A stretch of 62,271 bases of DNA, filler included, from Platydemus manokwari (taxonomy: Eukaryota): the NCBI GenBank assembly GCA_037951405.1. It is 5 parts of 5 records of this genome, joined end to end, with 100 filler letters (N's around TTAATTAATTAA, not from the genome) between each part and the next. Parts side by side here need not be neighbours in the genome. Positions count along the whole stretch, not along the records: positions 35,428 to 50,740 come from JBBMOY011303650.1; 4 more parts are not named here. One strand, 5' to 3'. The stretch's first letter is position 1. Every line of letters begins with the position of its first letter. Made by a program: the position numbers and the translations under genes. The notes beneath the pieces are model-generated. The model was not told the DNA's origin. It worked only from the letters and a program-made list of their open reading frames with translations, and made no database searches. Positions 35,428-50,740 of this stretch are shown piece by piece.

Positions 35428-35849
35428 ATGTTCAGCGTTATAACAATTTGTGTTAATAAAATACCTGCATAAAAACATGAATAACTTTTGACTCAACCTG
35501 GTAAATCCCACAATTATGATTTCATTAAAGAACCATGAAATGTAAGAAATAATAAAATCAGATATACAAGATGATTATCTTCACTTATATCTTTAGAAAA
35601 GTTATATTTTCTTGCGAAGATTGACAAGAATCAATTTTCTCGAATCTGTAGTAGTAGTTCTTACAATGAAGGATAACGAAGGCTTCAATAAATAAAATTC
35701 TTGTTTTTATTTCTCCAACTTATTCTACACGAATAACTATATTTCAGGAGAAATTGCTCCTTCTTTTACGAAACTTTATAATGCCAATCAGTATCAGTGG
35801 AACAATATGTGTAAGCGTGAGGGAACAATGAGCTATATAAAGATTTGAG

Positions 35850-35990
35850 TGGAAAAACCATCAATAAAAGATATCAATTGGAAAATAGTGTTACAAAATA
35901 TTCGGGAAGATAGAATTAACAAAGATAGGAGATATGTGACACAGATCATCAAACATAGACATAAGATTTTAATCTATAATTACGGTTTGA
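35850..35990 (+). mobile_element. Possible decayed L1/Tx1-type LINE ORF2 C-terminal fragment
   Basis: DINWKIVLQNIREDRINKDRRYVTQIIKHRHKIL resembles the W-xx-IW...K-x-R...KI-x-H-xx-L segment that precedes the zf-RVT knuckle. Flanked by stops. Confidence 0.3.
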
Positions 35991-38900
35991 AATGAGTAAT
36001 AATAATAAGTACAACAGAAATCAATCTTTTACAGAATATAAATATACATTATATATTATTGGTTTGTTATATTTGATCATATCTATCAATATTTGAAAAT
36101 TTATTTTCTATTATTAATATATTTTAACTACTTAAAACCAATTCTAACTAGCTATTGTCTTTCTGAGTTAAGATAAAACAATTAAATTTTCATGTTTGTC
36201 ATAAAAGATAATTCATATTTATAGTCAATTGAAAATGATAATGAAATAATCTAAAATTCAAGACCAAATAAATTTCCAAATCAACGAAATCGATTCTAAA
36301 CCAAAAATGTTTCAATCATAAATTGTCGTCAACAATATCTTAATTCATTCTAATGATATTACTTAATAATTTGTATATTATTATGCTAATTAATTTATGA
36401 TTTTTTATCCGAAATGCAATACATTTTCATATCATTCCATAGTCCATACAAATCATATGAATTTCATTTCTTATTTAAGTTTTGATTTGTTGTAATACGA
36501 TTATTTTGTATGATAAGGTTTTGATGAGTAAAACATTTAAATTTTGTTTTATTCTCCTTTAGTTCAATTTGCTTCTAAAGAGAAAATGTAATATCATGTA
36601 TGTCTATATTAAAATATTTGCTAACGATTTATAAAATTGATAATCTTATTATGTGTATTACAAGGTCACTCATAGCTAACGTCAATACCATTATAAATAT
36701 AGAACTGTAAAACCTGATTCTTGGTTTAAAGATAAATTTTGTCTAAAAGTTGCTTCGCACTTCATTCGGCTGATGAATCTAGAAATTGCTTTTATCAGAT
36801 TGTGATTCATGTGGCTTTTATTGAGTGAATAAACTTATACAGATTTATAAATTGATAAAGATACATAAACGGAACAATTTAAAGTTACATATTTTACAAA
36901 ATCAACATTTAATTTCTCGCAAACATCCTAAATAGTAAATTATGTTGTAATAATTACAATTTCTTATATACAATACTAGACATTGTATTTTATTACTTTT
37001 TATTGAGACTGAAATCTCGCTAGCTACTGACCTGGTTTATATAGATGAATAAGAATTTGTTTGGTGTTTATAATTTTTGAACTCTATCTAAATGTTTGAA
37101 TTTAGCACTTTCCTCTTTAACACTATCGTTAGCACATGATCCTATATATATATATATATATATTTATATATAAGTTAAGTTAAATTCACAATCCGTCATA
37201 ATATTTATTTGAAAAAACTGCCATCAACCGCCAATCAATTATTTAAACAAACACCATGTGTTTATTTATTTAATCACGTTACTTATAGTATCTTTAATAA
37301 TAAACGAACGTAATATTAATTTATAGGACTTAATAAAACTTTGTAAACATGAACCCATTTCAATCATGCAAGGCATGATGGCACTTAGAGCTTTATCTAA
37401 AGAAAAATGCATATAAATATAAAGTTATATTAACCACATCTGTGATCATAGACTAACCTCTTGGAAAGACTCCAGCATTCTGGCACTCCATGTTTTGGAA
37501 TCTTGGTCTGCTAAATTTATGGTAAAATATTATTTTGATGAAATAAATATTTGTTTTGATTTTTTAAATAAAAGTTGCTTTTTTCAAAACATAAGTATTT
37601 AATCTGGATTCAGAAATAAGTACAAAATGCAAACATTAATTGAAAAACTGACCATAATTTTTATTGAATTTAAAAATAAAAGCACGCTCACCAATAATTT
37701 GAATAAAACTCTTTCAGCTTAAAAGATGTATAAATTATATATTAATAATTTTCTGGGAAAATGAAAGGAAGATGGATTAAAAGAGTTTAAAGAATTTACT
37801 TAAGTCAGTACTAGGATAATGAGGAAATTGTTTTAATTTTCAGATCTGACTGATCTAAACAATCATGATAAATTATCGTATCATCTCTAACCATGGAGTT
37901 TTTTACATAACTTGCCTTCTGGAATTTCTAATTTTTTTCTAAAACAATTTTAATAAATTTGAAACGTACTAAACTATATCTATAGATGAAAATTGTAATA
38001 AATTTTAGACAACAACTAATTAAATTTCTAAAATCATAGAGACGATACGTTTGGATCATGGTTGCTAAATTTCTTATAATTATCAATTACCTAATTGGTA
38101 TTACTTCTGTTTTACATTGCTCCTTTGATTTCTATTTATTAGTTTTTCGTTCACCTCACACTCTAATTATAATATAAAGATTGCTAGACTAGCAGAAGTA
38201 ATGTTTTATTTTTGATATCAGTCTCGCAGACACCTTATTTAACAGTATAATTCACTAACTATAACTACTAACCAAGTCAAATATGGTGAGGGTTGATAAT
38301 GAAGTTAAATTTTTAACTAACATGTTGAGGGTCTCCACATATTCAAAAATTCCAATATTTCAAACATTTCCATATTTTCAACACAATCTTAATATTCCAA
38401 AATCATTCTCAAACATCACTCTCAAACAAAAAAAATCTAATTACAAATTCTGACATGCCAAATTTCGCTAAATATTCAACTAAATGTATAATCCAACAAT
38501 CCAAAATTGATCCAATTCGATATTTTGAATCTTTAACTTTTATATTGATTGAACCTTAAACTTTTAAATTGATTGAGTCCTTTGAATTATTAAAAATCTT
38601 GTATCGCTCTTGTTTGATGCGATGGTTATTCGCGATAGTAATATTTTATAATTATCATTTTTTATGATTATGATTTCAAATAATTATCTCTTTATATTAT
38701 TTTAATTTTAAAAATCTTTGTAAATTGTAAATTTGAATAACTGAAAATAATAACAATAATCATTTAATAATTAATTAATTTCATTAATCTTTTATTAGCC
38801 TTCACCTTTTTTTACCGATATCTATCGAGTAGATATTTATTAACAATCTATTTACGTATTGTAAAGTGTTCTGGCAAATTTTGTCGTTCTTTTGAATTTT

Positions 38901-40412
38901 GTTAAATTTTCGCTTTCTTAAATAAATCTTGTTAATATTAACAGAGTCGTTATTATTCTCCACACACATTGAATAATAGTATTTATATTAATTTATTATT
39001 ATGAACGTTTAGTGCCAGACAAGCTTGCTGTAGGGAGACTAACGATCCCTATTTGTAACAGTCAATTTATATAGCTTAAAATCTTTAGGTATTTCGACAT
39101 CATACAAGTCACTGAAGCCCTCTAAGACCAGGGAGAAAATATAAAACATCTCAACATAGCATATTTTTAATATACAAATGATGTATCACTAATTATAAAA
39201 CTTTTGAAATCAGTGATACATATCACCACTAAAATTAGTAAAAATATTGTAAAATAAGAAAAACCAAAAGAAATTATCCGATGTTGAAGGAATCTGAAGT
39301 GGATGCAAAATACTTTTATTAAATTTCATGGTATGTCGGCAACTTTTGAATATCAGATACTACTGTGATTATCGTCAAAGGAGATTTAGGGATTTGTGGA
39401 AGGGGATTATTAATTTATACAATTTTCATAGCATTATTATAATTAACTTTGATTATAAGTTAATTAATTTCATTAAAATTTTAATCTTATTAATTTTTAG
39501 CAGAAGTCTCTTCCATTTGTTTTGGTAATATTCCTTGTGTGGGTAGGTAGGCAGCCATCTTTTTTTCAGTAGTGTATTGCGATTTTCCAATTTTTCTTGT
39601 TATTTTGTATCTTGTTAAATTTTCTGATTTCCTAAATATATTTTATTAACACAGTTTGCAAATATTAATCTCTATACGAAGTAAATAATAATATAAATAT
39701 TATTGTCTACATTTAGTACTAAACCATTTCACTTCAGTGGGTAGATAATTCTTGTTGCAACAATCAATTGGGTTGAAACGATAAAATTAAATAGCAGAAT
39801 CCACTATAAAATTTTACTACAATATGATTAAATTTTATCCGATGAGATTCTTAGGTTCAACCCTTCATATGTTTTTTAATCACGTTGATATTTTTCTTAT
39901 ATTTTGACCTGTTTCTGTGAATTGTTAATTTTTCTTTGAGTTAGTTTTGAAAAATTTTTTGCTAGTAATATTGACCGCATTTACGACATTACAACACACT
40001 TTCATTTTTACATGCCATTTTTCTTAGCAATTGTTTTTCGGTTAATTATTTATTTCCTATTTTACAATTTTAGTTTTCCTTTATCGTTATTATTGTTTCG
40101 TTTATTAAAGAAAACTATGATATTTATATTTTAAGGTTTTTGCATTTATTTTTTACTATAATCGATTTTGTATTTTTACAATCTTTTAATTAAACGAATT
40201 CATTTTAAAAATTAAAATTTAAAAAACTTTCGTAAGCCATGTAATTAAATGTTTATGTAATTAAAATTTTATTTAGAATAATTATTCAATTTCCACAAAT
40301 ATGTATTTTATTATTTTTAATGTTATGAATTAAAATGAGATTTGAACTAGAAATTATTGATTGATTTAATTTTCAAATTAATTATTATCTCTCATTAATA
40401 ATGTGACAAAAA

Positions 40413-43400
40413 ATGATTTCAAATGTTAGTAATTGTTGGGCGCCATCTGATACAACATTGGAAAATTTAATGTACCAGACACACCAATGTCATGATAATA
40501 CTAACGAGGATATTGAAATGGTTAAGAAAATGTTGAATAATATTAAAATAGAATTATCATTTATTAATGGATTTACGGATAACGAAATTAAAAATCAAAG
40601 CAATGTTGTGAGAATTAAATTAAAATCTTATGAGAATCAGATAAATAAATCAATTCGAAGAATCGTTAATAAACAAAATACTGTAACAGAAATATCAGAC
40701 AAAATTGATGTTTTCAGTAAAAATATTTTTTCAGAGCTTGAAGCCAGCGAGTTATACGAAGGTTAGGCGATTATTTTCAATAATTTTTAATTTTCAATTT
40801 GTTTTTTTTTAATTATTTAAGGTCATACTCAGAAAGAATCTAATCATTTCAATATGTGGAATAAAAACACTCGATTCGTTAATTTAAAAAAATATCATCA
40901 TCAATTGGAAAAGTCTAAAGTACGAATTCTAAATGATATTGACAATCTTGATAAATTAAATCGGTTAGTGAATGAAACTCAAGCTCAATTACAAACAATC
41001 TATCGAAAAATTCCCAAAATATCTCAGCCAACTAAAATCAACAATAATAACATTTCTGAATCTGAAAAAGAAAAACTCAAAAGTGAATGCAATAAAAGTA
41101 GACCCAGTTTAAGCATAAGCGATGAAAAACTTCTCATTTTGAATAAAGCCCAAATCAAAGAAGAGTTAAGAAAGAATTGCAAAGCATCTTTTGAGAAAGA
41201 AAGAAAACTTTCCGAAGATTTGCGATGGGAAGAAAAAATGAAAATGATAGAAAAGTATAATATTTATAAGGAACATGTAAAAAAAACTAATGATAAACGA
41301 AGATATGTATCATTAAAGGATAGTTCCGATAACATGCCTGATTCTTTGTTGTCCTCATCGATAAAAGATTTGTCGATAATATTCAATGAACAAAACAGTC
41401 ATGAGGAAGAAAGAAAAGCTTTAGAATTAAAAGGATCCAAGAAACTCGAAAAAATAAGGATATCTGATATAATATCAGAAGAGTATAAGCAGAATGGTGA
41501 AGATAATAAAATAGAACATAAAACAGTGGATGATTTGATATTAGAAAAAGAAACAAGTTCAGAAAAAGACGATAATGAAGAAATAATAAAATCAAGAAAA
41601 ACTACAGATAAATTAAAAATCTCCCCAGTGAACGATGAGAATAAATTATCCCAAAATGATTGGTTAAAAAAGAGTATTTTTTCAGATAATAATTTAGACA
41701 GCATTGAAACCGATTCACAAAAAGCAACTAAAAATCAGCCAGATACAATTCCCGTTATCGATGCTAAGACAGGCAAACTTGTATTAAGTAAAAGGTCAAA
41801 GAGATCAAATGTTTTGAGCAAGTGCGAAAAAACATTGAGACCAAAGGTTTTTGGTGATTTCTCGATTCAGAAAAATCTTACTTTGATTAGAAAATCAAAA
41901 CCATCTATGCCAAAATTTACAGACGTAAAAAGAATGTCACCAACAGAAAACAAATCAGCTCAACCAATCAAACAAGGATTGGAAACTCAGAACACTGGAT
42001 ATTCAGAGGAGAATTTTTCACTTCAATATACAAAGATTGACAATTCTTCACTAAATTTAGTAAATAAATTGAGCATTAGTAAAATTAATGAGAAAACAAA
42101 TGAAAAGTTTAAAGAATTTGATCCCAGTCAACCAGAATTGAAATCTTCTGTCCGTCCACAAACTGATGCCACTTCGTCAATGTACAATGAACAAATCCAA
42201 AGTCAGAGATATTCTAAAATCGATCAAAGCGTTGATAAATCAGATAAAAATTTATTCATTAATAATGAAACAATATCAAATGAAAATTTGGTGAAAGATC
42301 ATGAAGAAAAGTTTCGTCCATTCAAACGAGGATTTAATTGTTGTGACAGTATGAAAATGGAAAGAAAAATTAGCAAAGAAAACTTTCCAATAAATCAGGA
42401 TAATAATCAAGATCAATCAATTTACAATAATAAAGCTGATGCATACCCAATTTCAAATAAAGAATTTTCAAATAAACTTAAAAATGAATCAATTATCAAA
42501 TCCGTTCAGAATAAATCCCAAATTGAAAACCAACCGAAAATCGTAAATTATTCGAAGAAAAATAAAATACCAAATCAAACAACCAAGAAAAATGAATTCA
42601 CGAAATTAAATAAAATGGCTAACAAATCACTGGAATGTAAGGATGTAAAATTTAGAGAAAATAAAACAAATCCAACCAATCAATTTAGACATTTAAAAAC
42701 AGATTCGCCTAAAATGGATGAAAAAGTGAAACCGCAAAATAAGATTGAAGACACCGATGTCATTGCTCCACAATTTGAATTACAAAGAGACCATGTAGCA
42801 ACTAATAAAACGGATAGTTATTCAAAATGCGGAAAATTTTTCTGTCAAGATATAACATTCAAAAAAATTATGAATGATTTAAATCAAACCAAACCTCAGA
42901 TTCTTGACTCACAAACTTATGAAAATAAAAGATCGAGCTTAAACGGAAAGAAATCACTTTCACCAGGTCAAAAAGAATTACTCTTAAATAAAAATCAAGG
43001 TAAAGAGGAGGATATGAAAGAAAAAACTAGAATCATAGATGATAGCAACAAGCCTTATACTTCACCGGAAAATTTGTCATTGAAGAAAACATGTTGTGCT
43101 GATATTTTTAATAGGAAAATTTGCATATCTTGTCAAACTAACCAAGTTAAAGATAAATATAATCAAACCGATTTAAATAATCTCAAATCTCAGGAATTTG
43201 AATCTATTATTATTACAGATGAACTCGCTGAGAAGTCAAAAGATGTGGACGTTTCAAAAACATCAGATCAAGATATCAAAGTTCCATCAAAAATATACCT
43301 AACGGATGAAACTAATAAGACAGAAGAATCCATTGTGAAGGAAAATAAACAATGCATTGACATTTCGATGAAAAAATTATGCACCTGTGGCAAAACGAAA

Positions 43401-46400
43401 ACAATCAAGAACCTTTCTACAGAGAATAAATATCAATTTGATGAAGAAAAGGAAACTGTTACAGCGGACTATACGTTTGATTCACAATCACGCGAACTGA
43501 AAACTCCAAGGTCATTAGAAAACCTGATTGATGATAAAATAAATAAATTCAAAGATACCAAGAAATCTTTTAATAATGATATTAATGATTTGAGAACGGT
43601 TTCAGAAAATGAAATCAAAAAAGATGATTTAATAAAATCCAAACAAAATAGGAAAGTTTGTTTTTTCAATGTGTGCACAAGGTGTGATAGAAAAATGAAA
43701 GACATTTCCAATCAAACTAAACCAGAAGATCTTGAAAATAAAACTGAATTTTCCATGACTCTTGAAAAAAAGGAAACGATGATGTCATCAGACAGCATTA
43801 TCTGTCAATCTGAAAGAAAGAACGCAGACCTCATAGACAATATGACTGTATCAACTAAATCTAAAGAAATTGGACTAGACAGCACCGAAAAAATAACTAT
43901 TGGATATTTTGAAGAACTTTCTAATGAAATCCACGAAAACATCGAAACCAAAGAAGAAATTCTTGAAGGTAAATATAATAAAATGAAATTGATATCATCA
44001 TGTTGTTCTTATAAAATGAAGCCAGTTGAAAACAAGGGAAATATTTACGAAAATGAAAAACTAGAAAATGTATTATTAAATGACAAACAATCACAATACA
44101 GTGACGTTGTCAAATCAGATAATTTGGTAAATAAACAAAACGATAAATATTTTGAACATGAAGTAAGTAAACCAATAAAATGTAATATTCATGATAAAGA
44201 AGTCAGCATATTAGAGAAACCCATTGATGAAAATATCAATGAAGAAATATTAAAAAAATCTGATTTGAAATTAAAAGATCATAACGATGTTGATGTCAGA
44301 AAAACAAATGTGGTATGTTGTAAAATTAATAGAACCAAAGAAATTCATCTGAAAAATGATGATAGAAATATTGAAGTAATAAATATAAATCAAAAATCAA
44401 AACCAATTGACAATGACATGCCGGTTTCAGTTAAAATTCAACAATCTAATCAACCCAATGTAGAAAAAACTGAAGTCGAAAAGTTGGATTCGACAATTTA
44501 TGTAAATAAGCGAGTATCAGTTGAATGCTGTATTGTCAATAAAACGTATATATATTATCGAATAAATGAAAATGAGAATCGGAAAGATAATGACATTAAA
44601 AATGATGATATGAATTTCCATAAAATTAATGGATCAGATAAGAATAAATATAAATCAATTGTGAATTCAGAAACAAAAGACTCAATGGTTGATAATGAAA
44701 GATTAGATTCGAAAATGAAATGTAAACTGTGTTCGAAAACAGAAACGGTCAAATCAAATCAATTGGCCCTCTCAAATTTGAAAAATCATGAAAGTGAACA
44801 TGATACTGGAAAGGAAATAATTTTTAATCATGAAAAGAATGATAGAAATGAATCTGATCGCATGAAATTTATTGATAATGAAAAGGAACCTCGGAAAAAT
44901 GATACAAATGATACTCGATTTGATGAGGACTTAAAAAATAATCCAAATAAAGCAAGAGTAGTTCGAAATGGTCAAATAAATTCATTAATCACAAATCAAA
45001 TAGAAAATAAACAAATTGAAATAGCTAATACAATGAATTCATTGATTTCCAAATCTGACAATGAGGAAAGAAAATTCACGAAAACATGTTGTCATAAAAT
45101 CATTACTAAATCCGAAAATCCATCACCAAAATCAGATCAAACCATAATCAAATCGGAAATTTCGATACAAGAAAAATACATAAATCTAGAATTAACAAAT
45201 CCAAATGTCACTGGAAAGGCTGATACAATAAAAGAATCTAAATATGATAGTCCATATTCACAAATACCTGATTTCTATGAAATAAACCTAACGAAAGATA
45301 AAAACGATAAATCATCAAGTGAATATACGAGATACAAATTTCCTTGTTGCAAAACTGATATTCTATCAGAAGAAATGAAACCCGATCGAGACAATTTTAA
45401 TAGTAAATTAATTAAGAATAAAGTCGATCATAACGAAATAATGGATAAATCTAATATGTTATACAAAATCCAATCAAAATCAGCTTTAGCTGATTCTGAA
45501 AACATTGAAAATACTGTCTTGTCAAGTAATTATTCCGATAATTCAATGACCGATAATGAAGTTCAAAATCAAATCTCAAAAGAGCTTGACACAAAGCATA
45601 CAAGAAAGATAAGCTGTTGTAAGAATACAGAAATTATTAACTCCACAAAAAAATTAAATGTCGAAGAAGTCCAATATATTATTAATTCTATCAGTAACGA
45701 AGACAAGGAAAAACTTCAGCGGGAAGCTCAAATGAGCGAAGGTGCCAGATTGATGGAGGAAATAAGAAGCGATGAACTTATAAACCAAACCAAAAACGAG
45801 GAATTGAAAAAAGAACAATTTATAAAGGATAAATTGAAACAATATAATCATTTGATTCAAATGGAGAAGGAAAGAAAAGAATTCAGAGCAAAATGTGAAG
45901 AAGAGCGAAGATCAAGAGAAGAAAAGCGACTTGTTGAAAAGTCAAAAATTGAAAACATATACAAATCAAAAGATAAATATAAATTGACTATCAGAAATTG
46001 TAGTAATACTTTTAATATGGACAAAATTACGGAAAGAGAAAGAAAACATCTATATGTATCGCCCATTTCTAATAAGTCATTAGAAACTATTTCGAACACG
46101 ATGAATAAAAATAAGAAATTACTTTTAACTCCTGGGATTGATTCATTGATCGATTTTTGTTCTCAATGCGATACTGCTAGAAACAGTCACAGAATAATTC
46201 CAATCGATAAAAACTATTATGTGGTTTCGCAGATGAATAACAATGTTATTCAAGAAACGGATAATAAAATAAAAAACAATAAATTTTATGACAATGTAGC
46301 TAGGCATATGAGTGAAAAGAATATTGTAAACCATAATGATAATGTCGTCAGGAATGAGAATAGGAACCACAAATTTAAAAACAATGAAAGTTTAAATGAT

Positions 46401-49400
46401 ATAACCAAGGTTCAATCTTCAAATGTCGACTGTATGGAAACAAATGAAACAAAAAAAACTATGAGAGATAAAAGGCATATTCGCAAATTTAACAGGAAAA
46501 TATCCATTGCTAAAAACTCATCTCATGATTCAAATTTTAACTCGGTTTCGAAAACAATTTCATGCACAAACACAATTGAAAATCAGCAAAATAATGGAGA
46601 AAATAATTCAATAGAAAAAATCATAGATGAAAGTCAGAAGATTATAAGAAGACAAAAATATAATATGGGCTACATAAGACAATCCAAATGTTCGATGAAA
46701 CATGATAATAAATTATCAGAATTAAAAACAAAAATCATGAGAGATCAAGTTCTCTACAATGAAACTATAAAAAGAAAAGGTCAGTCAATCGGAACTAAAA
46801 ACAATGACGAGGAATTAAATTCTAATATTGAAAGGCAAAGGAAATTGTGTTGCGAGTATCGTACAAATATCGTTTCAAACAATTCATCGCAAAGTCATAT
46901 CATTGAAATCAATCAAATCAACCAAAACAATGTCGAGAGTAACAGGAGTGAAAATCAAAATATTGAAATTAGAGAAAAATGTCATATTGGCTATAAGAGA
47001 AAATCCAAATTATCAGATGATAATGATAAAGCAAATGAAGAAATGAAACAACATATACATAGAGATACAACTTATGAGGAGAGTGATCACTCTGTAGATA
47101 AAAATATTAAAAAAAAGAATTCAGATTTAATTCAAAAGAAAAAATGTTGTTGCTGCGCATGTGGTTCAACAAATATTTCAAAAGAGGTATCCCAACGGGA
47201 ATCTGTAGATGTTCCTCAAATTGTCCGAGTATCAGATAATCAACCACCAAAAATATTAGAAGTAATCTCTGATGAAAATAAATCGGTAAATGAAATAGAT
47301 GAAGAAATTAATAAAGAAGCCAGCTTTGTAAATGAATGGGATGATAAGAAGCTAAATAATGGCGTTGATTCCGATAGAAAATCACAATCAATAAACGAAG
47401 ACATTAAAGATAATGCCGATGAATCAGAAAAAAAATCAATCGAAAAAGTAAACCCAGTACCAAAAGTTAAAAAAATCAAGAAAAAACATTATCCATACTT
47501 TGACGAGGAAGAAACAGTTGACACTACGGAACCTAATGATACATCTAATAATAAAGAACTTTGGAAAGAGACTTCCGATGAAATTTCAGACGATCATGAA
47601 AAAACTGATGACGACTTTATCATTCCACCAGACGATGCTAATAATTTTAAATATTGGCCAACATATTTGTGAGTTTTCGCAAAATGTTTAATATTTTCGT
47701 AATTTTGATTTTATAAATTACTCTTCGTTAGGGACATTTCTATTATAAAAAATGAAAACATGATTTTAAAAAGTTTTTTTATTGTTGTAACATTTGAAAC
47801 CAAGTTAAACAAGCGGCATTAGTATTTGATGTTCTAATTTCATTAATTTAGCAAAGCTAATTATTGAAGAAAACTAGAAGGGTGCAAATTTTCATAATAT
47901 AAGTGAATGGTTAGGAAAGTGGAATTACCTGGACATATTGTTGAAATCGATTTTAATTATTTTCAAGGCTCAAAATAATTGTTATGCACTGACTTATATC
48001 AAGTTGGAATTGGATTAAGATTAATTTAATTTTATAACACAGTCGAACATCTAAGTTTATAATTTGATTAAAGCCATTATTTAAAAATATAATTAGAATA
48101 TTAAGTTAATTTGTTAAGTAAACTTATTCTGTTATTTCTTTTTCAACAAATACTTCATGAGAAAGAATATTCACTTTAGTTAGTCGTAAGAATAAATTGA
48201 AATAATTAATGTAAATATCGGTTCATTTTTTTATTAAGATATTGGATCAAACCTGAAGGGTCACCAACAAAAAAGATTGGATGCATATTGAAAGCTAAAC
48301 CAAATAGTATATTTCGAAAGAAAAACTTAATTTGTCGAGCAATTCCATCATCCAAAGTATTGCCACCAATTGATTTGAAAGAAGATATTGCTAGTTTACC
48401 ATTCGAACTAATTCCTCATGAAGAAGCCCCTGAGTTTAATGTAATATATGCTAATTATTTAATTGATTTAAAACACAATTAGTTTACAATATCTAAAATA
48501 TAATGCTCTTTGTATATAAAACTTGCTTTTTCTACGTTTTGTAAAGGCAGTAAAATTATGAGTTATTTATTAAAATTGGCGTGTTGGATGTGGATATTTA
48601 TCCATACGATCACTTCGGCAGTGGAAGTTCGAAGGTACTTTTCTTAATATAAGATTTGTTAAATATACGCTATTATTAACAAGTTTCAATCAATAAATAG
48701 AAATAAAAAAGATCATTGATTTGAAAAAACTTTTATTAAAATAATTCTATAAATAACAAACGATTTTGTCTATTCACAATTTTCAGTATGCACAACAATA
48801 ACAGAATAATTATTATTATCAATTATAATTGCAAAGTTAATTTGGTATAGGATATTAACGATCAACATATAAACCGTGACTAAATATTCCGAGCTAATAT
48901 AATCCAGCTACATCAAAAACCCTTTAATTTAATTGTTAATTATTATAAATGATATTCTATCAAACAAATAATAACAAATGTCCTATTACTTAAACGTTTA
49001 ACTCAACCTTGATTTAAAAAAAATGGATTTCTCGGTGAAAACCTTTATTTCAATTTATTTATTTCATTTTATTTTGGGTTTGGCCTTAACAGAAATCTGC
49101 ACTTAAAACCCGTATAGTATTCTTCCTACTTTCAACAATAGTAAAGTTAAATATGAAGATTTTGCGAAGATATCCTTAAACATGATTTAAATGTCGTTTT
49201 ATTGTTTGAAATGAAATATTTTCAAGGATTATTAACAGAAAAATATTATCTTATCCATAGGCATTTCTTTATTTATTATTGATAAGAAAATAAGACATGT
49301 AAAATTTTTATATAAAATATAAATTAGAAATAATATACGAAATTAATGAGAAATATCTCATATTATTTCAACTATTAAAGTTTGAAAATCCTTGGAAGAT

Positions 49401-49859
49401 AATCATACCTCATATTTTGCCTAAAAACCACCCCAAAGAACCAGTGATACTGATGCTGAACGAAGAACAAACAGAATGGATTGAATTGCCAACATCCGAA
49501 ATAAATATGGATGAACTTAAAGAACATAAACTAAGATTTGTTGAGTCTAAATTAGAAAAACCATCAGGTATTTTCATCATTCAAACAAAAACGAAAATTG
49601 ATACTGGAATCATAAACAAACACGGTGCTCGTATTTCGAGTTCAATTGATAGTCGAGTATTTTTATCAGTTCCTGCTGGTGCAATTAGAATTACCCTAAA
49701 TACTTCTCTAAAGGTTATTTAACTAAAATTCAATATTTTATATTAATAAATTTTTTCAGATAATTATGGTTGATCAAAATTTTTGGAAGGAATTGAAGAG
49801 TAAATTAGACAAGAATCCATTAGAACAAGTTGTTTCTTCATCTCATCTTATTGAATTCA
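40413..49859 (+). CDS. DTHD1: Death domain-containing protein 1-like (tandem ZU5) with a giant low-complexity N-terminus; exons 40413-40761, 40822-47668, 48239-48440, 49381-49713, 49760-49859; 3' end missing
   Basis: All four introns are GT-AG with matching phases (1, 2, 0, 0), giving ~2610 codons. The C-terminal exons read IGCILKAKP..LICR, ASLPFEL..F..PWKIIIPH, SGIFII..., GARISSSIDSRVFLSVPAGAI..SLKIIMVD..VVSSSHLIEF. This is collinear with ZU5-A/ZU5-B as remembered for DTHD1 (SSMDSRISLNYPPG..LKIQPVD..STSPLI). No ankyrin repeats or LRRs, so not ankyrin or PIDD. Confidence 0.8.
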
Positions 49860-50127
49860 GTACGTTTATTAATTATAATTTGTATTTAATTTATTATTTT
49901 AAGAAAATGAATGAGTTGCTCATAAACAAGTATAAGTATAATATCGCTTAGCACTGACCTCGATTAGTAATCATAGTCTCAATTAAGTATTATTAACTAT
50001 TGAAAATAAAAGATAATTCGTCAACGGTTTCGTTATTATGAAACAAAGCGATGTACTTCAATACTTATTATATATCTAAATAAGGAAAATTATAATAACT
50101 TCTGTATGGTCAGTGTTAGTTGTACAA

Positions 50128-50231
50128 TTCAAACACCTACTGATGATATCCTAACACCTATGATTGCTAACAAGATTATATGTTTCGGCTGGCAGTTGTT
50201 AGTAGCAACTATTTTCAGTGGGTGTTTGGAA
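50128..50231. mobile_element. Inverted pair of degenerate minimal hammerhead motifs, probable Penelope-like pLTR relic in a DTHD1-like intron
   Basis: + strand AAACACCTA-CTGATGA-TA (50131-50148). The - strand reads AAACACCCA-CTGAAAA-TAGTTG...CAGCC-GAAA-CATATA (50227-50177). The two arms are inverted copies of each other. Confidence 0.45.
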
Positions 50232-50740
50232 TACCGACAGCGCGTCTTTAAATGATAGCTATTTTACGTTAGCCAGAAACTGGGTTGTTTATTTTAGATA
50301 TAATATGGATTAAAATTTTCCATGATTTTTTATTATTTCGTAACATTAAAACTTCCATAAAAAATCAAATTTTATTATAATAACAATTATATTGAATTTC
50401 TCCTTCACATAAATAAAAGAAAAAATATTTGTTATATAATGAATGAAAATATTATGCTGTTGATTCGAAATTATATTAATACGGATACACAAAAATAAAG
50501 CACAAATGATACTTTGTACAATTATTGTCTAATATTATGATAATAAGTTGATTTTGATAATTGTACCTATTGGTGTGATCGGTATGCAACAAATAAGGGG
50601 AAATTAAGGTTTTTATAAAAGTTGATTTTGGAGAGCTGAAACGATGACAAAAGATAAGATTAAGGTACTTTCCTGTTATCCGGGATGCAGACAAAACAAT
50701 TAATATATAAAATAATATTTAATCAATATATTTAATTTAG

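Follow-up and report, generated by a model that had tools for sequence, protein, structure and literature searches.

A giant, probably constitutive linker exon in a DTHD1-family gene of Platydemus manokwari

The window analysed in this study is a stretch of 62,271 nucleotides (filler included) from the genome of Platydemus manokwari (GCA_037951405.1), and the piece examined covers its positions 35428-50740 (record JBBMOY011303650.1), which contain no N and have a GC content of about 27% (27-30% in the giant exon described below). The plus strand of this piece carries the 5' part of a gene in which one uninterrupted exon of 6,847 bp precedes exons encoding ZU5 domains of the type found in death domain-containing protein 1 (DTHD1). 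This long exon is likely to be the linker exon of a DTHD1-family gene, giant in size and constitutively included. The exons (E1 to E5) and the first two introns are arranged as follows:

40413..40761, plus strand: exon 1 (E1), starting with ATG, 116 codons and 1 base, ending in phase 1 with the split codon G/GT
40762..40821, plus strand: intron 1, 60 nt, GT..AG, phase 1, as read from sequence
40822..47668, plus strand: exon 2 (E2, the giant exon), 6,847 bp, 2,281 full codons and two split codons
47669..48238, plus strand: intron 2, 570 nt, GTGAGT..AG, phase 2
48239..48440, plus strand: exon 3 (E3), 1 base and 67 codons, N-terminal two-thirds of ZU5-1, starting Y-W-I...GCILKA
49381..49713, plus strand: exon 4 (E4), 111 codons, end of ZU5-1 and start of ZU5-2
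49760..49859, plus strand: exon 5 (E5), 33 codons and 1 base, ZU5-2 continued; its donor is the least certain boundary

The five exons are in phase throughout, the gene leaves the piece after 49859, and the coding length on the piece is about 2,610 residues. E1, which encodes a segment that looks helical, is the longest open reading frame (ORF) of the 5 kb upstream region (117 aa vs 66 aa for the runner-up), and an in-frame TGA is located 9 nt 5' of its ATG. If intron 1 is left unspliced, an immediate TAG follows, and a TAA at 40818-40820, in the AT-rich acceptor tract, abuts the 5' end of E2. The 3' end of E2 reads tt/GTGAGT at 47668/47669. Read-through at this donor leads to a TGA after one further codon, so the first-pass annotation was right that failed splicing at 47669 terminates the protein at once.

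No stop interrupts the frame of E2 between 40821/40824 and the TGA at 47670-47672, a span of 2,282 codons, whereas the longest open frame among 200 shuffles of the same 6.8 kb was at most 138 codons (mean 74). The remaining five frames of the region contain 96-365 stops each. As judged by the difference between 2,282 open codons and a shuffle maximum of 138, the frame has been kept open by selection. The exon is rich in K (14.2%), N (11.1%), S (9.6%), E (9.5%), I (8.4%) and D (7.6%). Thus both the long stop-free exon of biased composition and the selection behind it, as proposed by the first-pass annotation, stand. The same does not apply to its term 'giant isoform': the length of E2 is 3n+1 and the introns on its two sides are in phase 1 and phase 2, so that skipping shifts the frame, which argues for a constitutive exon and not for an optional cassette. 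Each ZU5-bearing product begun at the E1 ATG includes E2. With regard to similarity, a search for homologues of the whole of E2 among proteins of 1,255-3,992 aa returned none, not even the protein itself, and E1 and E2 gave sub-threshold noise only when compared to Pfam, NCBIfam and PDB sequences, with no ANK, Ig/TSP, transmembrane (TM) or LRR match in Pfam. A weak match to CaV-beta2 (E 0.03) in the E1/E2 searches was taken as chance.

In relatives of this gene the motif RxNPxNWPRxIYS...GCIIRA is found directly before ZU5-1. E2 ends with ...NNFKYWPTY, the split codon encodes L, and E3 starts with YWI...GCILKA, giving WPTY-L-YWI across 47668/48239, to which E2 contributes the following:

47655..47668, plus strand: E2 half of the pre-ZU5 motif, W-P-T-Y and the tt of the split Leu codon

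In the hhalign comparison YWPTY pairs with NWPRY (columns 6-10 of alignment A2). WPx[YFCQ] occurs only once in the 2,283-residue frame, within its last five residues, and the conserved motif WPx[YF]-[ILT]-Y is restored only by splicing 47668 to 48239. The genomic loci of six relatives were mapped, namely Dimorphilus (L001), Aplysia (L002), Biomphalaria (L003), Lingula (L004), Lineus (L005) and Asterias (L006). In all six, which represent five phyla, a phase-2 intron interrupts the motif at the same position, with two bases of the I/T codon on the 5' side and one on the 3' side; in Aplysia this intron is readable on the acceptor side only, the upstream exon being located in an N gap. The helical-domain exon ends in all six with a phase-1 intron whose split codon starts with G, and the same is seen at 40761. 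Since the motif as well as the position and phase of the intron are conserved, the joining of E2 in phase to the ZU5 exons, as described in the first-pass annotation, is supported at the level of sequence. The phase-1 (post-helical-domain) and phase-2 (motif-splitting) introns are ancient introns of the DTHD1 family. Both are kept in an echinoderm (Asterias), an annelid, a brachiopod, a nemertean and gastropods. The Aplysia locus contains 2,203 N within L002:6834-10486, where the linker exons are expected, among them the one that would finish in NPNNWPRF, and the protein annotated there rests on other evidence.

To which family the gene belongs was judged from E3, E4 and E5. When compared by phmmer to 1.84 billion proteins (representatives), E4 gave 21 matches, the best at 8e-20. 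Full-length matches were obtained in Lingula, Owenia, Haliotis, Lottia, Mytilus, Batillaria, Biomphalaria, Aplysia and Lineus, and several of the matching proteins bear the name death domain-containing protein 1 or death domain-containing protein 1-like. The matches were to ZU5+Death proteins only, i.e. proteins with a weak ZU5 match, two Death matches and no ANK or LRR. With the exons searched singly, Pfam detected only a faint ZU5 match at E4 residues 75-104, and PDB sequence searches with E3 alone and E4 alone gave nothing useful. A hidden Markov model (HMM) of the spiralian DTHD1-like family ranked E3, E4 and E5 above every other one of 605 six-frame fragments from the piece, at HMM positions that abut and are in order: 71-121 for E3, 124-235 for E4 (E 3.5e-30) and 233-268 for E5 (E 0.027). 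The DTHD1-like ZU5 identity, for which the first-pass annotation had suggested an HMM search, is thereby borne out. In addition, hhalign paired columns 20-69 of alignment A2 with E3 residues 10-60 (P 2.8e-4), and the starts of E4 and E5 correspond to the Aplysia exon starts at aa 1541 and aa 1649, respectively. The piece includes ZU5-1 and roughly half of ZU5-2. The family HMM had no match in 49860-50740, and the UPA and death domains would be located outside the piece.

Solved structures were compared with the C-terminal module (C-module) of 20 relatives, as aligned in A3. The A3 family profile matches the ankyrin-2 ZU5-ZU5-UPA-death domain (DD) structure 4d8o at 2e-29 by sequence. An AlphaFold2 (AF2) model of the relatives' C-module has a predicted local distance difference test score (pLDDT) of 84, and Foldseek placed it closest to 4d8o (1.2e-25), followed by ankyrin-spectrin complexes and then UNC5b. 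Lingula DTHD1 matches the DTHD1-like protein of Asterias at 3.5e-81 and fish DTHD1 (921 aa) at 9.7e-38 over 84% of the module. It should be underlined that the link to vertebrate DTHD1 is transitive only, from E4 to spiralian proteins and from Lingula DTHD1 to fish DTHD1. Because E3-E5 match the spiralian relatives, and Lingula DTHD1 in turn reaches both the Asterias and the fish protein, the exon sequences place the gene in the DTHD1 family, which is conserved across echinoderms, spiralians and vertebrates.

Some further observations were made on the relatives. Their C-module, as seen in A3 and in the model of P0014:303-1021, ends in two tandem death domains, one PIDD-DD-like and one FADD-DD-like. 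A beta-rich region at 282-507, after ZU5-2, exceeds a plain UPA in size. Pfam picks up ZU5 weakly in the relatives' proteins as well. P0001, a 'titin homolog' of Lingula (1,528 aa), contains two identical copies of the pre-ZU5 motif and ZU5, at about residues 308 and 830, which E4 matches at identical scores; this doubling represents either a tandem duplication or an artefact of assembly or annotation.

The six relatives have 133, 145, 145, 138, 150 and 205 residues between the phase-1 and the phase-2 intron, compared to 2,281 here. This linker consists in the relatives of an A/E-rich coil followed by an E/R/K-rich helix; in the present gene the interval is a single exon, expanded about 16-fold. 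The relatives examined have 272-1,471 residues before the WP motif vs about 2,394 here, and among proteins of 1,198-3,813 aa we found no relative longer than the 2,179 aa of Aplysia, although the search was word-based and may miss distant kin. The first-pass annotation had left it to a comparison of N-terminal lengths whether such a size is the norm. It is not, yet long N-termini are found in gastropods, where they are produced by a different giant exon. In Aplysia the first coding exon is 3,711 bp (L002:2001-5711, aa 1-1237) and in Biomphalaria 2,991 bp (L003:501-3491, aa 1-997), and the disordered N-terminus encoded by these giant first exons is rich in S/E/D and precedes the helical domain. 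Growth of exon 1 in gastropods is independent of the growth of E2, and enlargement of the N-terminal part is recurrent in the DTHD1 family. As for E1, the first-pass annotation regarded it as a coiled-coil exon; its similarity to the helical domain of the family was not significant (P 0.38 by hhalign with the helical-domain profile, P 0.09 by shuffling).

The interior of E2 has a mean hydropathy of -1.17. In a single-sequence AF2 model of E2 residues 1100-2281 the mean pLDDT was 33.9, with 1,091 of the 1,182 residues below 50, and E2 is accordingly predicted to be mostly disordered. The only part of this model at pLDDT 55-83 is a helix of about 100 residues, uninterrupted in the manner of a single alpha-helix. 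The cysteines of E2 are arranged in an unusual fashion, since 37 of the 49 are located in 15 dicysteine motifs or in one further C-x4-C pair. The features in question are:

42339..47162, plus strand: 15 dicysteine motifs (CC, CxC, CxxC, CCCCxC), E2 residues 506-2113
43092-45620, plus strand: regular core of the dicysteine array, E2 residues 757-1599
45696..46004, plus strand: charged, E/R/K-rich long helix, residues about 1625-1727, pLDDT 55-83 (AF2)

This helix may be left over from an ancestral charged helix. Adjacent CC pairs number 12, whereas 5,000 shuffles gave 1.05 on average and never more than 7. The motifs in the core are spaced 65-122 residues apart (mean 93, coefficient of variation 0.19), which gives a P of about 2e-5 relative to random placement with a core that was chosen post hoc. 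When the sequence was aligned on the cysteine pairs, neither the flanking residues nor the flanking DNA were conserved, and the cysteine codons are a mixture of TGT and TGC. Unconserved flanks and varying codons point to selection on the cysteines themselves. The relatives' N-termini contain no CC motif. Neither E2 self-BLAST nor Tandem Repeats Finder found internal repeats, and a recent tandem-repeat origin of E2 was ruled out on this ground together with the lack of conserved flanks around the cysteine pairs. Just upstream of the cysteine motifs, K/R make up 31% of residues vs 18% in the background, and hydrophobic residues are enriched too; this enrichment makes S-acylation the leading guess for the role of the cysteine pairs.

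In the region 35428-40412, upstream of the gene, ORFs do not exceed 66 aa on either strand and several tandem repeats, short and AT-rich, are present; these 5 kb 5' of the start codon appear to be non-coding. Rfam and tRNA scans of the piece and the introns gave nothing above threshold.

We propose that the window contains the 5' two-thirds of a DTHD1-family gene from a spiralian-type animal. The layout of this family in the six relatives is an N-terminal exon ending in a helical domain, a phase-1 intron, a linker of 133-205 residues ending in NPNNWPRY, a phase-2 intron, an ankyrin-like ZU5-ZU5-UPA supramodule and finally two death domains. In the present gene the linker exon would have been enlarged to 2,281 codons without loss of the WPxY motif at its end or change in the phases of the two introns beside it. 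The product would consist of about 2,610 residues on the piece and of about 3,100 with a complete C-module.

A number of points weigh against this proposal. A search of public sequencing runs for this DNA yielded one DNA run and no RNA run. The exons E1-E5 were searched one by one, and the C-module with UPA and death domains is deduced from the relatives, as it lies beyond the piece. The AF2 prediction of disorder, made from one sequence, counts as weak evidence; the P value of the cysteine periodicity was obtained post hoc; and the chemistry assigned to the cysteines is putative. Finally, in profile searches E1 and E2 had no significant similarity to the helical domain or the linker of the family, and for this reason E1 and most of E2 could differ in origin from the rest of the gene.

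Two alternatives were considered. According to the first, mature mRNAs mostly have the large in-frame interior of E2 spliced out, as an exitron or by internal sites, and the giant form is minor or tissue-specific, as it is for the giant ankyrins. Such removal would bring the linker to the 133-205 residues of all relatives; moreover, the conserved introns tie only the two ends of E2, and GT and AG dinucleotides are plentiful in AT-rich DNA. However, an interior that is not used would not have remained open for 2,282 codons, when shuffled sequence reaches 138 at most, nor would cysteine pairs be kept across it at the amino-acid level with mixed codons. We therefore regard internal removal as unlikely. 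The second alternative starts from the missing similarity just mentioned: E1 and most of E2 would come from an unrelated upstream gene, or have arisen de novo, and have been fused to the tail of a DTHD1 linker exon. A phase-1 donor after G is common by chance, so the phase-1 match could be coincidental, and the relatives' N-termini are devoid of the CC motif. On the other hand, the layout agrees with that of Dimorphilus and Lingula, where a phase-1 intron separates the ATG exon from a single linker exon and a phase-2 intron follows, the long E/R/K-rich helix of the relatives' linkers has a counterpart in E2, and N-terminal parts diverge fast across the DTHD1 family. A fusion thus appears improbable.

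We hold it very unlikely that E2 is a gene of its own, extending from the ATG at 40854 to the TGA at 47672 and giving a ZU5-less product, with the ZU5 exons belonging to a neighbouring gene. E2 does have an ATG at codon 11 (40854), and the stop lies 4 nt past the proposed donor, but the motif WPx[YF]-[ILT]-Y is rebuilt by the splice alone, from a sole E2 copy in the last five residues, at an intron whose position and phase are conserved in five phyla; in addition, E3 contains no ATG, and its ZU5-1 would be left without the conserved motif that precedes this domain. An assembly artefact, contamination or a decaying pseudogene is hardly credible: although the sequence is present in one public run only, probably the source assembly itself, and protein databases give neither a self-match nor a close relative, the GC content and A-skew of E2 are continuous with the neighbouring exons, the frame is intact over 6.8 kb, and the splice sites and phases are intact and conserved.

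Taking E2 as the constitutive, enlarged linker exon of a DTHD1-family gene, we can consider what the protein may do; a tether and anchoring function is much less certain than this structural claim. The product would act in the cytoplasm as a long and flexible tether that holds a helical head at its N-terminus apart from a docking module of the composition ZU5-ZU5-UPA-DD-DD. Its cysteine pairs, spaced at regular distances, would serve as repeated attachment or cross-linking points, most likely by S-acylation to membrane, with metal or disulfide bridging as alternatives. Going one step further, CC pairs at every ~93 residues could be anchoring points that pin the ~2,300-residue linker, of otherwise unconserved hydrophilic sequence, at fixed intervals along a membrane or lattice, making the protein a periodic 'stapled' molecular ruler. 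This idea is tentative and we rate its chances as rather low. If true, a 'stapled' ruler on a ZU5-UPA-death module would be of a new type, convergent with the giant ankyrins and different in mechanism; the periodic dicysteines in any case provide a concrete, testable feature. As to the biological setting, DTHD1 is listed among Leber congenital amaurosis (LCA) genes with its function unknown (PMC5574398), and the human protein has been detected in the motile cilia proteome (PMC12310455). The latter finding is the sole link to the ciliary, sperm or neuronal role suggested in the first-pass annotation, and makes a ciliary role a lead, not a result.

In evolutionary terms, the segment between the N-terminal head and the ankyrin-like ZU5-UPA module tolerates growth of about 16-fold under selection for an open frame. 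Because the linker was expanded here and gastropods independently enlarged a different N-terminal exon, the N-terminal half can be regarded as a spacer of tunable length, which argues for a tether or ruler role of the DTHD1 family.

Compared to other DTHD1-family proteins, the present gene is similar in that E3-E5 match ZU5-1 and the start of ZU5-2, the pre-ZU5 motif is common to both, and ANK repeats, LRR and a transmembrane part are absent upstream. With Aplysia or other relatives it has four intron positions in common, of which the first agrees by place in the layout and phase only. It differs in having a linker of 2,281 residues with 15 dicysteine motifs, whereas those of the relatives have 133-205 residues and no dicysteines, and in an N-terminal helical domain that is unrecognisable by sequence. 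The gastropod DTHD1-like proteins (Aplysia 2,179 aa, Bulinus 2,168 aa, Biomphalaria 1,937 aa) resemble it most in outline, as they too have a disordered N-terminal expansion encoded by one large exon. In contrast to E2, however, the exon that is giant in these proteins is exon 1 and precedes the helical domain; the linker has remained at 138-150 residues, and CC motifs are lacking. UNC5 and PIDD1 are unlike it, since neither Ig/TSP and TM parts nor LRR are found upstream of ZU5 in E1/E2 or in the relatives.

The closest parallel in architecture is provided by the giant ankyrins, 480-kDa ankyrin-G and 440-kDa ankyrin-B, which have a single giant exon of about 2,600 residues located between UPA and the death domain (PMC6765234). 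Common to both systems are a multi-kb uninterrupted exon, a largely unstructured segment and its position adjoining a ZU5-ZU5-UPA-death supramodule, with fold similarity to ankyrin-B (4d8o). The ankyrin exon, in contrast, is alternatively spliced and vertebrate-specific, whereas E2 lies N-terminal to ZU5-1 and is not skippable in frame; unlike the ankyrins, the protein has no ANK repeats, as judged by the absence of a Pfam match, by the stop just 5' of the E1 ATG and by the lack of further ORFs above 66 aa in the 5 kb upstream. E2 and the giant exons of ankyrins are of independent origin, and the first-pass annotation had correctly placed the expansion N-terminal to ZU5-1 as a separate event. 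E2 would thus represent a second independent case, besides the ankyrins, of a giant exon adjoining a ZU5-UPA-death module, and its growth an unusual, but not unprecedented, route to a giant scaffold protein.

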